Made by a program: the position numbers and the translations under genes. Source: Gracilinanus agilis (taxonomy: Eukaryota). From it: DNA of 64,000 nucleotides. The DNA lies in assembly GCF_016433145.1 (NCBI RefSeq), contig NC_058131.1:711108069-711172068 (forward strand). Reading direction: 5' to 3'. The notes beneath the pieces were generated by a model. It was not told the DNA's origin and made no database searches. It saw nothing but the letters and a program-made list of their open reading frames with translations. Each line of letters starts with the position of its first letter. Position 1 is the stretch's first letter. Of this stretch, positions 14,941-20,339 are shown piece after piece.

Positions 14941-16692
14941 TATCTGTGCCAGTGTGGGGCTCCTAGCAAGGTCATGAATTCTTGAGGTAAATTGAAGAAT
15001 TATAAGGAACCAGTGAGGTACAATAAGGTACAATCTCAGCTTTTGTAGAGCTCGAGGATTAGAGAAGGAAATATTCTCTCCACCCATTAGCAACAACAGA
15101 AAAGCATTCACTGAATGAGAAAGAAAAGGTAAAAATGAGTTGAGTGCCAACTTTAGTGTCTAAATGTGAAGGGAATGCTGATGAACATTGAGGTTGGGCT
15201 TGAACTGGGTTCATGGCTGGCAATTACTCCTTGGCTGTAAATTCCTCTTTGGTGGCTACTCTGGAAAAGGGAAGAAAAGGCCATCCCCTACCACAAATAC
15301 TGTTAGCTTCCTCCAGAATAAATAAGATCTTTCCCCTTCAAAGTGAAAAATAGCCTAACTTTGAATGAGGATTAGTCTGAGCATTCTCTTAAAAACTGAC
15401 AGGCACTGAAGGACATATGCCTGGGCCATTTTTACCTCTGGACTCAATTGACAGCTTGTCAATGGGCAGTTCTTTGGGCTGCTACATTTACCATTCCCTG
15501 CTTGCCCCTGCTATGAGACAATTCCAATTCAGAAACATACTTGTCAGAAGTGATTTTTACATTTTGGAGAGATTAAAATCCTTTATTAAATTTACATTGC
15601 TTGTGCTTTCTGATAAAGAACTAACCCCCCATGACAGCCCATATTTCCAATTACCTCCTCCGGGTGCCAGGGAGTCCCCAAGTAGGAAGGATCTAATAAT
15701 CTCGATTATGGGCAGCAGCGGGAAGTCTCTTAAGTACCAGGGAAAGCATTTATTAGACAGAAAGTATTAGCAGCCAGCTTTGCTGCTCCGGGAATGGGCT
15801 TGCATTTGTTAAGGACAGTTCTTGCTGGTTTTTTTTTTTAAAAAAGTAAACTAAAACTATGACATCATGGCAGCTGAGAGTAACTTTGAATCCTCCAGAA
15901 GGAATCCCAGTCTGCTACTCTTCCTATGGAGACAGTCAATGTTGGGCTGGTTGCTGACTTAGGCTAGATAGAGAGGAAGTTCACTCGGAATGGCTCCTTA
16001 GAGACTAGAAACCTGAGCTCAGGAAGCCAGGCAGCCAAAAAGCACCTACTGTGTACCAGGCATTGGGGATATCAAGAAAGGCAAAAGACAGTCTGTGCCC
16101 TCAAAGAGTACTCAAATTTAATGGTCCATATGGGGACTGAAAGGAGGCCTGAGACTCGGCCTCTCCCTTCTCCTTGAGGTCTTTCAGAAAGGGTTGTTGG
16201 GTATTTGAAAATGGGTACAGTGATGATGGTCTTCTCAATCAGTGACCAAGATGCCAAGAAGAACCTTCCATGGAGCCTCATCATAGTGTAGAGATAAACG
16301 ATGCAGTCTCCAAGGCTCTGACGATGCAGCCCAAGTTCTGGACACTTCTACCAAGATGTGGTCTCAATTGAAGATTCTGCTTTAGGCCAGCTAGTTAAGC
16401 ATAGAGTAGCTTCTCAGGAGATGGGCCACTTGGTGTTCACAGTTATATGACAGAGCAACTCTTGTCCTTCATCTTCCCATCCACCCAGTTTCCCCATCTC
16501 CTAGCAGTAGGAGATAATCAGAGAGATGCACAGTAGAGACCTTTCCCTTTGGTTGCCATAAGAGGCAGGGTTTGAGCTGAGATGGGGGAAAGATCCTTAG
16601 TGAACACATTTGCCTTCCTGTAAATCATTACAGCCCAATGTAGGACTGTAGAGACGGATAGGCAAATGCCATCATTACTTTGAAAAGTACAT

Positions 16693-16886
16693 CAGTGGTC
16701 TCAAACTGAAGTAGAAAGGAAGTCTGGGGTTGCTCATTGACTCAGGAAACCATATGTTAACATTCTCTATGTTCTATTATATTTTTATTTATTTTGTTAA
16801 ATGTTTCTCAATTACATTTAATTTGCTTTGGGTCTGAGACTGTTTCTGGCTGGCGGTATGCACCTTCCACATGTTTGATACCTCTG
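16693..16886. mobile_element. Old hAT-Charlie-type MITE
   Basis: cagtggtctcaaact...tgtttgatacctctg termini. Confidence 0.55.
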
Positions 16887-17092
16887 ATCTGTATGACCTT
16901 GGACAAGTAACCTCTCTGGGACTCAGTTTTACCCATCTGTAAAATGATGGGATTAGAAGAGATGAATCCTAATATCCTTCAATTACTACGATCCTATAAT
17001 TTCATAGTTACATTGATATGGGTCTTCCCTTCCCTGAAGCATGGTAGAGAGCCGGAATGAGCTAGAGACCAAAAATTGTCATTACCCTTCAT

Positions 17093-17296
17093 TAATGGAT
17101 TTCAACCTTTTTGGTCTCAGAATCCCTTTATACTTATTGAAGATCTTTCCAAAGAGCTTTCATTTATATGAATTATCTCTATTAATATTTACAATTTGAG
17201 AAATGAATAAAAATAAGTTAATACACTTAAATACTTATTGTTATCTAAAAGTAACAGTAATAGACCCATTGGATAGGAACACAGACAACATTTTTT
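17093..17296 (+). mobile_element. hAT-Charlie non-autonomous DNA transposon (Charlie1b/MER33-like), left part, split by the retrogene
   Basis: ttcaacctttttggtctcagaatcccttta...ccaaagagcttt...aatagacccatt...aaca resembles the Charlie1/MER33 5' end as recalled. Confidence 0.7.
17281..17296. repeat. Left target-site duplication of the retrocopy (acagacaacatttttt)
   Basis: Matches acccacaacatttttt at 19401-19416: a 12-bp exact core acaacatttttt, 14/16 overall. Confidence 0.8.
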
Positions 17297-17301
17297 TTTT
17301 T
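17291..17301 (-). repeat. Retroposed poly(A) tail remnant (T11 on plus strand), partly overlapping the left TSD
   Basis: ttttttttttt lies directly after the AATAAA-defined cleavage site. Confidence 0.85.
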
Positions 17302-17840
17302 GAGGCCTCATCCCGTTTTATTGCAATTTCTCATCACAGCCAAAGAGTAAGAGAGGAAGACACAAAAAGCGACCAACACGGGGATGGGCCAGGCTCAGGC
17401 TCACCCCCCACCCCACCCCTCAGGGCTACACTAGCACAAGGATCCAGGGACTCCTCCCACCCACAAAGAAGTAGCTAGTCCTGAGGGCAGGGCTTGTTGG
17501 GGGAAATAAATAGGGTCAGAAGGGAAGGAGGGAGGGAGAGGGGGGGGGGCCTTCCCAGGGAAAGAAGGAATTTGGGCTTTCTTATATATTATACATTCAC
17601 GGAGCAAAGGGCTACACCTGGGGGGAGGGGAGCTTCCCGCTGCCTCGGGCTTCTAGCTCAGCCTCCCAGTCCTCGGAGTGGGTCTGGGTCCTAGACAGCA
17701 GCAACTGCTTTTTGTTACCATGGACAGAGCAAGGAAAGGCGGGCTGAGGGCCACGGGGAGGGAACTGGTAGCGGGAGCTCTTCCCAAGGGTGTGAGCACC
17801 CCTCCGCCCGCACCGCGGGCCCCGCTGGCGGCTGCAGGGG
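17302..17840 (-). other. 3'UTR of the ATP6AP1 retrocopy
   Basis: GC-rich segment between the stop codon and the poly(A) remnant; composition changes abruptly to AT-rich flank at about 17300. Confidence 0.85.
17317..17322 (-). terminator. Polyadenylation signal AATAAA of the retrocopy
   Basis: Plus-strand tttatt at 17317-17322, about 15 nt upstream (in gene sense) of the poly(A) remnant. Confidence 0.85.
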
Positions 17841-19274
17841 TCACTCGGTCAGGGGCACGGAGAGCGTGCTCCCCTTGTGGTCGTCGAAGCGGTCCATGGT
17901 CTGGAGGTTGAGGATCATGTGCAGCCCGTAGGTGAAGACGAAGAGCAGGATGAGGGAGGAGACGAGCCCCATCCAGATGCCGGGGGAGAAGAAGCCGGCG
18001 CAGTCACTGGCGTACGAGAAGTTTCCCCCGGACAAGTGGAAGGCCTGGATCTGGAAATCCTGGAAAGTCACGTGCCAGGCCGAGGAGCCGGGCAGAGCCA
18101 CCAGGAGGCTATTCTTGGACCGTTCGCTGCTGACATACTCGCAGTGGAAGGAGTAGATGCTGGGCGCTGCGATATGGGACGAATTGAAGACAACGACGGA
18201 GTTGTTGATGTGGATCTCCAGTCGATCCAGGGTGAACCAGCTCCGGGCCGAGACGGGGTACAAGCGGTTGTTCAGGAAGAGCTTGACGGTCAGGAAGGGG
18301 CCAAAGACGTTTTGGTACGTCATGGCGAGCTGGGCAGAGGAGCTGTTCCAGCTGGAGCCGCTCAGGTTGAGGGCCGGGTTCCCGAAGGTGAGCGCGGTCA
18401 GGTCCCTCGACTTGTCGTTGTAGGTCACCGTGAAACTCTGGGCCCAGAGGAGGATTCGAGGCTCCGGGTCGTTGTAGCTCACTGGCGGAAGGGGCGGGGA
18501 CGGGGGTGGCCCAGGCTCCGAATCCTCGTTCTCTCCGAGGAGGTGCCGCCCCAGACCCCCGGCCACCATCGGCAAGTCCCGAATGGCCCGGGAAGGCCTC
18601 TCCGCAGTCAGTAGGGCCGTATAGGGCACGCCTTCCGCCTGGAGGGTGTTCATCACCCGCCCAATGATCTCGTCGTTGCCGGTGAGCACTTCCTTCGGGG
18701 CCATCAGGCCGGAGCCGGCGGTGTAGGGCAGCCTCAGGAGTAGCAGAGCAGGGAGGGTGTCGTTGAGCTTCAGCTCCCGCAGGGTGGCCCCGTCTACGTG
18801 GAGGGGACTCGCTCCCAGCTTCCCCGTCAGGAGGGAGGTCAAGCTGCTGGCTGCGTGCCAGGCCACCGAGGGCAGGACCAGGGCGGAGGGAGCCGACTCC
18901 AGGGCGTTCTCCAAATTGGGGAAAGCGCTGTCTGGCTTGTTGCCAAACACGCCGCCGTACGCAGTGAAGTCTTCCACGCTTAGCTTTTCCTGCAGGAAGA
19001 GCAGCACGTTTCGGGGGCCCCTCTCCAGGGCGGGGGCCAGGTAGGCGGCCAGCTGGCCGTCCGTGGTGATGTGCCCTTCGTGGGCGTTCTCCAGCGGAAC
19101 CCACAGGTCCCGGGAGCTCGACCAGAGCACTATCGGCACCTGCTGCTCCGCGGCGGCAGCGGCCGGGGCGGCGGCGGCGGCCAGCAGCAGAGCCAGCAGC
19201 AGTGACTGCAGCCGGGCCGCCGATACACCGGCCATCGCTTTAAGCGCCGCAGGCCGGGCTCTCGCCGCCGCCAT
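17841..19274 (-). CDS. ATP6AP1: Intact intronless retrogene of V-type proton ATPase accessory subunit S1 (Ac45), 477 aa
   Basis: The ORF track start (19331) is a GTG. The first ATG is at 19274 in strong Kozak context (gcggtcATGg), and TGA is at 17841-17843. The translation follows human ATP6AP1 as recalled: [57 protein letters not shown], furin-type [42 protein letters not shown] helix, [10 protein letters not shown]. No introns, stops or frameshifts. Confidence 0.96.
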
Positions 19275-19400
19275 GACCGCGCAGCCCCTTCGCAGGCCAG
19301 CGCCGCTCAGGTGACTGATGTCGCCGGCCACTCTAGGCCGAGCCCGCCCCTGCCGTGCTCTCCCATTGGCCGGGCCCGCCCTCGTCCTCTTCTCCTATGG
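19275..19400 (-). promoter_or_regulatory. 5'UTR and core-promoter-like segment of the retrogene (two GC boxes flanking a CCAAT box)
   Basis: On the minus strand: GGGCGGG (19375-19381), CCAAT (19365-19369) and GGGGCGGG (19343-19350), in a CpG-rich TATA-less context. All lie inside the TSD boundaries. Confidence 0.65.
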
Positions 19401-19416
19401 ACCCACAACATTTTTT
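19401..19416. repeat. Right target-site duplication of the retrocopy, followed by AA (L1 endonuclease TTTT/AA site)
   Basis: acccacaacatttttt|aa; this is the geometry expected for a minus-strand L1-mediated insertion. Confidence 0.8.
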
Positions 19417-19747
19417 AAGGGAAAAAGAACTCTATTTTCCCAAACGAAAAAAGGAGGGGAAAGAATAGTCTCGTTTTACAGATTCTGGCAGATCTAATGC
19501 TTGGCTTCCGAGAGGACGTGGGGAATCGGGGATCCGCTTCTGCAGTCGCCCTGTCGTGATGTGTCCTTCCGCTAGAAGTCGGGAACAAAGCTCCGCCTCA
19601 CCCTGAGGTCTGCTTTGAAAAGGGGTCAATATTTCAATAGGGAGATAACACTCGAGGCTTCTTATGAAACTAGATTTGACTTCACAGACTCTGTGAGAGA
19701 GTCTTGGGAACTTTCAGTGCTCTGTGGACAAACTTGGAGAATTGCTG
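19401..19747 (+). mobile_element. hAT-Charlie non-autonomous DNA transposon (Charlie1b-like), right part
   Basis: Continues the recalled consensus across the TSD (aacattttt...aactctattttcc...gttttaca...gcttctgca...gcctcac...gaaaaggg) and ends in a Charlie-type terminus (tttgacttcacagac...tggacaaacttggagaattgctg). Combined length is about 0.53 kb. Confidence 0.68.
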
Positions 19748-20339
19748 TCATATTTTCATCGTTGGAAAGTGCTTAGAGATCATTTAGTAGTCAAACCCCT
19801 TCACTTTGAAACGGAATTAGGGCTGCGGTGAGTGACCTTAGAGAAGCACCAGGTGATCTTTTCTTTGAGGAATAATGAGGGCTTTTAAATAACGTCCAAA
19901 GAACGCGAGACTTTTAGCCTTCTGCTTTGTGACACTTAATGATCCTTTTAAGGGCATCCGGACTTTCGGAAGCCAGGATTCTTGGGATCCGTCTCTGAAG
20001 ACAGTCAGGCTTGCTCTTGGGCAATTCAGTTCAACAAACATTTCTGATTGCTTAGCACGCGCCTTGCACATACCTACTAGGTACTTAATAAATGTTTACT
20101 GACTCACTGATCCCTTGGGTACGTAGAAGAAGCAGCCTAGTCTAGCACTGAATGAAGAGTTAACTTTAGAATAATGAGGTTCTGGGTTCAAGTTGCTTCT
20201 GAAACATGCATACAAAGTAAAGGGAAATCATTTTGAGAGAGAGAGAGAGAGAGAGCACTAAAAACTGAAGGGATCAAGAAAGGCCCCCCACCCCCTACAA
20301 ACCCCCCCTTGCAGTTGGGCTTTGAAGGAAGCTAGAGAT

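Follow-up and report, generated by a model that had tools for sequence, protein, structure and literature searches.

An intact ATP6AP1 retrocopy on an autosome of the marsupial Gracilinanus agilis: a probable functional retrogene under G/C-directed substitution

The DNA analyzed here is a stretch of 64,000 nucleotides from Gracilinanus agilis (RefSeq assembly GCF_016433145.1, contig NC_058131.1, positions 711,108,069 to 711,172,068 of the forward strand), hereafter "the window"; positions are counted from its first letter. Its minus strand carries a processed, full-length copy of ATP6AP1, the gene for Ac45, in which the reading frame is intact. ATP6AP1 is essential for V-ATPase assembly. The copy has moved from the X chromosome to an autosome, purifying selection on it is supported, and we consider it probable that the window contains a functional ATP6AP1 retrogene specific to the Gracilinanus lineage.

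The processed copy, its location and its parent

The protein encoded at the locus belongs to the ATP6AP1 family. It matches the Pfam families VAS1_LD (PF05827; 132 bits, 2e-38) and Ac45-VOA1_TM (PF20520; 71 bits, 8e-20), both with scores above the family cut-offs, and the solved human ATP6AP1 chain 6wlw_U is colinear with it over residues 26-473. Its amino acid identity is 88% to the parental protein of the same species and about 66% to the human protein. When the parental genes of Dromiciops and koala were mapped by exon, each was found to have 10 exons in about 15 kb, and the open reading frame (ORF) in the window is colinear over nine of nine exon junctions in a codon alignment free of gaps; the ORF therefore has no introns. 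An intron-free, full-length ATP6AP1 ORF of 477 codons had been proposed in a preliminary description of this locus, and the Pfam matches and exon-junction colinearity confirm it on the minus strand.

The flanks of the coding sequence (CDS) carry the marks of a retroposed mRNA (Table 1). The 3' untranslated region (3'UTR) has about 540 nt homologous to the parental 3'UTRs of Dromiciops and koala and ends at the same AATAAA. The A-run that follows is 11 nt long, of which up to 6 nt may belong to the target-site duplication (TSD) instead of the tail. An exact 12-nt direct repeat, ACAACATTTTTT, flanks the copy, and homology to the parental locus starts exactly at the repeat boundary (~19402), 125 nt 5' of the conserved ATG. 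The A-rich insertion target fits L1-type priming. The 3'UTR, poly(A) signal, tail remnant and TSD of the preliminary description are thus all present. That description read the TSD as a repeat with two substitutions and took these as a sign of age. The repeat itself stands, but a 16-nt reading with two mismatches and the exact 12-nt reading are equally valid, and we dropped the TSD as an unreliable clock. A separate assembly made from the genomic reads of run X1 matches positions 16793-17938 with 0-2 letters differing. The same assembly shows G>A at 17392 and A>G at 17397, both in the 3'UTR, which may be heterozygous sites or assembly differences.

The copy lies on an autosome. The window protein is recorded on a scaffold of 725,203,407 bp in GCA_016433145.1. 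The published G. agilis genome has seven pseudochromosomes, of which chromosome 7 is the X, and its scaffold N50 is 683.5 Mb (PMC8390783); therefore the 725-Mb scaffold is the largest autosome. The mapping thus agrees with the earlier proposal that the locus is not X-linked.

The parental gene has introns in Monodelphis (on an 89-Mb contig), Dromiciops (85 Mb) and koala (78 Mb), spans 9-15 kb, and directly adjoins a GDI gene in these three species, on chromosomes of X-like size. ATP6AP1 and GDI1 are likewise neighbours on human Xq28. An intron-containing parent on the marsupial X, as had been predicted, is therefore found in three marsupials, while the Gracilinanus parent itself (P0003) is unplaced: it is a partial gene with a range of 9.0 kb on a 9.3-kb contig of the same assembly. 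The suggestion that the retrocopy might have replaced the X copy is refuted, since the intron-bearing parent is intact in the same genome and is evolving slowly.

The copy is confined to one didelphid lineage. In a phylogenetic tree the window protein falls inside the didelphid ATP6AP1 clade (support 100/100), beside the Gracilinanus parent (93/89). Identity of the gene with Ac45LP (ATP6AP1L) was considered and rejected, because the gene nests inside that clade. The replacements I133V, E288K and M443L are common to the copy and P0003 and absent in Monodelphis, so that the copy arose in the Gracilinanus lineage after the Monodelphis split. Of the earlier label "marsupial out-of-X copy", the out-of-X part is upheld and the marsupial-wide part is not: the window copy is restricted to the Gracilinanus lineage, and the genome contains two further intact ATP6AP1 genes without introns, three in all. 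These two are P0004, on a 313-Mb scaffold, and P0083; their gene ranges are 1416 nt and 1428 nt, respectively.

The encoded protein retains the architecture of Ac45. The hydrophobic signal peptide, the N-terminal luminal part, the RPSR and RAIR furin-type motifs (residues 226-232), the C-terminal luminal domain and the conserved cysteines C378 and C425 are all kept. The transmembrane (TM) helix is altered solely by I-to-V and K-to-Q changes, and the C-terminal cytosolic tail is identical to that of the parent. From the conservation of the helix, tail and cysteines, the product is predicted to be capable of joining the V0 sector.

Table 1. Positions of the retrocopy and its associated features in the window
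Feature	Positions	Strand	Evidence
Intronless ATP6AP1 CDS, 477 aa + TGA (ATG at 19274, TGA at 17843-17841)	17841..19274	-	ORF, Pfam, structure alignment
3'UTR from parental mRNA, CpG-poor unlike the CDS	17302..17840	-	3'UTR alignment, CpG profile, X4/X5 31-mers
AATAAA poly(A) signal, same as in the parents	17317..17322	-	3'UTR alignment
Remnant of the A-tail, read as 11 T on the plus strand	17291..17301	-	sequence
TSD, 3'-side copy, ACAACATTTTTT	17285..17296	.	direct repeat
TSD, 5'-side copy, ACAACATTTTTT	19405..19416	.	direct repeat; parental homology begins adjacent
5'UTR and proximal promoter from parent, ~125 nt	19275..19402	-	alignment to Dromiciops and koala parents
CpG island, ~1.8 kb	17800..19600	.	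CpG profile

G/C-directed substitution, the CpG island and transcription

Replacement substitutions in the copy have run almost exclusively from A/T to G/C. Among single-step replacement changes in the copy lineage, 35 were A/T-to-G/C and 2 the reverse, compared with 1:4 on the didelphid parental stem (p=6e-4) and 6:12 on the pooled parental branches (p=3e-6). The drive is also seen in P0004, a second copy at an unlinked locus (32:2). At replacement sites the drive is demonstrably specific to the retrocopies.

The copy lies in a CpG island that covers the whole coding sequence. The CDS of the copy has a GC content of 65%, a GC content at third codon positions (GC3) of 86% and 118 CpG dinucleotides, with an observed/expected (o/e) CpG ratio of 0.79; in the Australidelphian parents, GC3 is 0.60-0.64 and CpG o/e is 0.38-0.47, and the GC content of the window overall is 42%. 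Besides the CDS and the 5'UTR, the CpG-rich zone takes in about 200 nt of non-retroposed flank on the upstream side; at 19500-19599 this flank has 9 CpG and an o/e of 0.97. The 3'UTR is CpG-poor, and CpG o/e in the downstream flank is 0-0.29. Farther upstream, positions 19800-19999, which are not derived from the parent, keep 8 CpG. No second copy of the upstream-flank repeat was detected in the window or in the other loci compared.

The simplest account of CpG gain against a CpG-depleted background would be that the locus is unmethylated in the germ line. Active CpG-island promoters stay unmethylated in the germ line. Biased gene conversion is a candidate source of the G/C fixation bias. In a related thylamyine, a study of meiosis considered promoter-type hotspots possible (PMC10166821), which we treat as a lead for the drive at this locus. 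Loss of PRDM9 as the cause of promoter-centred conversion is unsupported, since the same study reports that marsupials retain PRDM9.

The copy appears to have brought a promoter with it. Its leader of about 125 nt contains a CCAAT box (19363-19369) and two GC boxes (19343-19350 and 19372-19381), and the same boxes occur in the same order in genomic DNA 5' of the parental ATG in Dromiciops and koala. Because the parental boxes are present in the copy, the source mRNA must have begun upstream of the core-promoter-like elements of the parent. The copy thus seems to have inherited the CCAAT/GC-box promoter of its parent, and activity of that promoter is predicted from the elements present. An upstream ATG that overlaps the CCAAT box opens a short upstream ORF of 19 codons (19332-19369, minus strand) that ends before the main ATG; a transcript would include it only if it began 5' of the CCAAT box, as the source mRNA did.

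Sequence words from the copy recur in four small runs (X2 to X5) of the same 2021 genome project, the type of which was inferred. Exact 31-mers of positions 17281-19416 were found at 45% in run X2 and 24% in X3, and those of the 3'UTR alone at 56% in X4 and 33% in X5. The deposits of the project are limited to whole-genome shotgun data and RNA-seq from kidney, muscle and liver (PMC8390783). Contig sets of 23-91 Mb cannot be whole-genome shotgun data that cover half of a single 2-kb locus, and we therefore read X2 to X5 as RNA-seq, probably from kidney, muscle or liver. Run X1 is genomic DNA, with even depth over the flanks; in X2 and X3, no reads were found on the downstream flank (15800-17290) apart from a repeat fragment at 16749-16821. 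The distribution of 31-mers in runs of this inferred type suggests that the copy is transcribed in somatic tissue. A fragment search returned no transcript-derived didelphid proteins.

The fragment at 16749-16821 is a piece of a very high-copy repeat. Over about 30-70 nt of it, the summed word depth in X1 reaches about 69,000, compared with 20-60 in the surroundings, and it is the sole part of 15800-17963 that X2 and X3 match.

Constraint on the protein

An intact frame is a poor guide to selection at this locus. We simulated 52 replacements under a given substitution spectrum and recorded the chance that the frame stays free of stop codons. With the observed A/T-to-G/C spectrum this chance was 64-74%, compared with 5-8% under an ordinary pseudogene spectrum, and the same GC-rich stretch contains spurious ORFs of 331 and 245 amino acids in other frames. 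The stop-free ORF was accordingly rejected as evidence of selection. The preliminary description had argued for purifying selection from the lack of disabling mutations; this argument does not hold, as so long an open frame is expected by chance, while the selection it was meant to support is upheld by the avoidance of invariant sites, the kept frame and the contrast between synonymous and non-synonymous change. The strong G/C bias means, more generally, that the shortcut from an intact ORF to selection misleads.

Replacements in the copy avoid the most conserved positions of the protein. We defined 93 sites as invariant in 84 tetrapod orthologs and 313 as variable. One of the invariant sites has changed (K458Q), compared with 43 of the variable sites (Fisher p=1e-4), and the difference persists (p=1.5e-4) when Gly, Pro, Ala and Arg sites, for which no A/T-to-G/C step is possible, are left out. 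Invariant sites offer 20.4% of the non-synonymous A/T-to-G/C opportunities, yet they received 1 of 44 changes (p=5e-4). P0004 behaves in the same way, with 4 of 93 invariant and 57 of 313 variable sites changed (p=4.5e-4) and deletions that are all in frame. The changed sites of the two Gracilinanus copies coincide, which shows that both are confined to one set of tolerant positions, whatever their ancestry.

The frame has been kept and silent sites have been rewritten far more than replacement sites. Over residues 60-477 (1.25 kb), the copy has neither an indel nor a frameshift relative to the parent of the same species; the sole length difference between them is in frame and lies in the low-complexity region of the signal peptide. 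When codons identical in the Dromiciops and koala parents were taken as a proxy for the ancestral codons, 77 of 89.5 synonymous A/T-to-G/C opportunities (86%) had been used, compared with 26 of 325 non-synonymous ones (8%). Corrected for saturation, the ratio of non-synonymous to synonymous A/T-to-G/C change is 0.04, along a path that includes the didelphid parental lineage. The dN/dS ratio of the copy over the entire path to the Dromiciops and koala parents, which also includes the didelphid parental stretch, is 0.17-0.21. A retrogene is regarded as functional when dN/dS against its parent is significantly below 1, by custom below 0.5. If the flood of synonymous change falls on the retrogene branch, dN/dS on that branch would be about 0.1, and both the retrocopy-specific drive at replacement sites and the drive in P0004 suggest that it belongs there.

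Some of the data point the other way. Since the split, the protein of the copy has accumulated about 42 amino acid changes and that of the parent about 3, a rate about 14 times faster. Three N-glycosylation sequons have been lost (through T270P and N280S, both common to P0004, and N413H), and the one invariant residue to change, K458, is a juxtamembrane lysine. No ortholog of the window copy was found among database proteins of other species, and X2 and X3 contain no reads from the 3'UTR (region 15800-17963). The open frame is uninformative under the observed G/C-directed spectrum. Moreover, if GC3 in the didelphid parent was already near 0.86, the synonymous flood would predate the copy, and dN/dS on the retrogene branch could be near 1.

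Apart from this last possibility and the change at K458, these observations, together with the stop-codon simulation and the spurious ORFs, are what a non-functional or recently dead processed pseudogene might present, its frame left open by GC-richness and G/C-biased fixation and its CpG island and substitution drive being by-products of a local recombination or hypomethylation hotspot. We regard this explanation as improbable. It is opposed by the avoidance of invariant sites after weighting for opportunity, the lack of any frameshift, the same avoidance and the in-frame deletions in P0004, and the occurrence of copy-specific 31-mers in the four small runs.

The two Gracilinanus copies share many changes, and this bears on both their ancestry and their possible adaptation. 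The tree pairs the window copy with P0004 (100/97), which would imply that one retrogene gave rise to the other. Of the 26 sites changed in both, however, 17 were hit at the same A/T nucleotide and are prone to convergence, and V225E is the sole change common to both that lies outside the G/C drive; a common retrogene ancestor was downgraded on these grounds. Convergence, from a shared drive acting under a shared constraint, is a serious alternative explanation of the pairing. Residues 138-162 in the N-terminal luminal part (~18789-18863, minus strand) form a local hotspot of parallel replacement, at which six residues that are conserved elsewhere (D138, Y140, T144, K150, E151 and Q162) have changed in both copies, differently.

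Such parallel change could also be read as the signature of a neofunctionalized Ac45 variant, in which the clustered, recurrent N-terminal luminal changes and the lost glycosylation reflect positive selection for a regulatory or trafficking role. In 11 of the 26 co-changed cases (D138, Y140, T144, S187, K212 and others) the two copies acquired different residues where mammals otherwise show conservation; V225E adjoins the furin motif, and K458Q affects a position next to the membrane. Nearly all of the changes are single A/T-to-G/C steps, however, as a non-adaptive fixation bias would produce, and we consider positive selection for a new role very unlikely. Retention of the ancestral protein by purifying selection, with tolerant positions yielding to the drive, is the reading we prefer.

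Repeated export of ATP6AP1 and comparison with known systems

Intact intronless ATP6AP1 copies are not peculiar to Gracilinanus. The third copy of this species, P0083, lies between a CARD/caspase (CASP9-like) gene and DNAJC16; Sarcophilus and Dromiciops carry orthologs of it next to the same caspase gene (L003:10001-11437 and L005:10001-11434). The clade of these copies (P0083, P0087 and P0090) has 100/100 support and a stem length of 0.85; dN/dS between Sarcophilus and Dromiciops is 0.16-0.20, and GC3 is 0.75-0.82. The CASP9-DNAJC16 copy is thus an ancient, pan-marsupial retrogene, and purifying selection on it is clear. Other intact intronless copies occur in Dromiciops, inside a TRPM intron and with a dN/dS of 0.32-0.46 against its parent; in Trichosurus, grouping with a Vombatus sequence (P0012); and in Antechinus, grouping with a second Sarcophilus sequence (P0066). 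The intronless state was checked for the Dromiciops, Antechinus and Trichosurus copies; Sarcophilus P0066, Vombatus P0012 and Monodelphis P0005 are related intact sequences. Public annotation names the other marsupial intronless copies merely "subunit S1-like". This distribution suggests at least four or five independent origins of ATP6AP1 copies in marsupials. Rodent and pika entries annotated as "S1-like" (P0063, P0075, P0094 and P0118) hint at eutherian copies as well.

The recurrence of such copies raises the question of whether they compensate for the silencing of the X chromosome. The window copy is a candidate male-germline back-up for its X-linked parent under meiotic sex chromosome inactivation (MSCI), in spermatocytes or spermatids and possibly for acrosome acidification. 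Its movement from the X to an autosome and the repeated appearance of intact intronless ATP6AP1 copies in marsupials are in keeping with such a role. MSCI occurs in marsupials, and the opossum has an excess of functional retrogenes derived from the X (PMC2276528); in mouse, dog and man, ATP6AP1 expression falls between the spermatocyte and spermatid stages (PMC4399420). On the other side, RNA data for the species come from kidney, muscle and liver only, and the runs that contain the 31-mers of the copy are most likely of these tissues; the promoter it carries is the housekeeping-type CCAAT/GC-box promoter of the parent; and the older CASP9-DNAJC16 retrogene, present in Gracilinanus, Dromiciops and Sarcophilus and constrained, was already available for the role. 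A germline back-up function for the window copy therefore seems unlikely to us, and the CASP9-DNAJC16 copy is the more natural candidate.

We propose the following history for the window copy as a functional retrogene. After the Monodelphis split, a full-length mRNA of the X-linked ATP6AP1 gene, begun far enough upstream to include the CCAAT and GC boxes, was reverse-transcribed and inserted on Gracilinanus chromosome 1. The copy would have brought in a minimal CpG-type promoter, escaped methylation in the germ line and been transcribed. The complete Ac45 that it encodes could enter the endoplasmic reticulum, undergo cleavage and become part of the V-ATPase V0 sector. Since the insertion, a local G/C fixation bias, likely caused by biased gene conversion, by CpG protection in an unmethylated island or by both, may have nearly saturated the silent sites and pushed tolerant amino acid positions to GC-rich codons, while selection would have held the invariant core and the frame.

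If the copy is functional, it represents a clean and datable X-to-autosome gene export in an American marsupial, and it would illustrate that a retrocopy can bring along the core promoter of its parent. The fixation bias toward G/C is unusually clear for a young gene, both at replacement sites (35:2) and in the share of silent opportunities used. Recurrent intact marsupial copies of ATP6AP1, one of them ancient, make compensation for MSCI directly testable for a membrane-protein assembly factor.

A broader and speculative interpretation, which we put forward as doubtful, is that Ac45 has been exported repeatedly from the marsupial X, giving one ancient conserved copy and at least four to five lineage-specific intact ones, with the promoter-carrying Gracilinanus copy becoming a CpG island open in the germ line and with near-saturating G/C rewriting of silent and tolerant sites at two loci. 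This would point to a marsupial-specific alternative V-ATPase assembly module and, if true, would offer a natural experiment on biased gene conversion versus purifying selection in a young gene.

No paper found in the searchable literature treats ATP6AP1 as the source of a retrogene or retrocopy, and neither of two papers listed as naming both ATP6AP1 and marsupials describes these intronless copies. Retrogenes that moved from the X to an autosome are a well-known kind. The closest parallels are housekeeping retrogenes such as PGK2 from PGK1, the three marsupial PGK retrogenes, CETN1 and the UTP14 copies (Potrzebowski et al. 2008, PMC2276528). Like these, the window copy derives from an X-linked housekeeping gene, lacks introns, lies on an autosome and keeps its ORF intact; it also shows signs of constraint, and copies of its kind have originated independently in several lineages. 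Unlike PGK2-type genes, which are defined by meiotic and post-meiotic expression in the testis, it carries the promoter of its parent and is apparently transcribed in somatic tissue; it is also young and limited to a single didelphid lineage.

Within the Ac45 family the comparison can be drawn at several depths. Parental ATP6AP1 has the same order of domains (signal peptide, luminal domains, furin-type motifs, two cysteines, TM helix and tail), whereas the window copy is intronless and autosomal, with a GC3 of 0.86, three fewer sequons, K458Q and the roughly 14-fold excess of amino acid change. The CASP9-DNAJC16 copy is likewise intronless, autosomal, derived from ATP6AP1 and enriched in GC3, but it stems from a separate and much older insertion that is common to American and Australasian marsupials, and it is 56-59% identical to the window protein. 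Ac45LP (ATP6AP1L; Jansen et al. 2010, PMC2812417) is similarly a second Ac45-type protein in one genome; it is, however, an ancient multi-exon paralog without a furin site, whereas the window gene keeps the furin-type motifs. Finally, inherited or acquired CpG-island promoters have been described for retrocopies (Carelli et al. 2016, PMC4772013), and new CpG islands for imprinted retrogenes (PMC3217256); in these, as in the window, the island extends beyond the insert. The island in the window differs in that it covers the entire CDS and was seemingly built mostly after insertion, by A/T-to-G/C substitutions.

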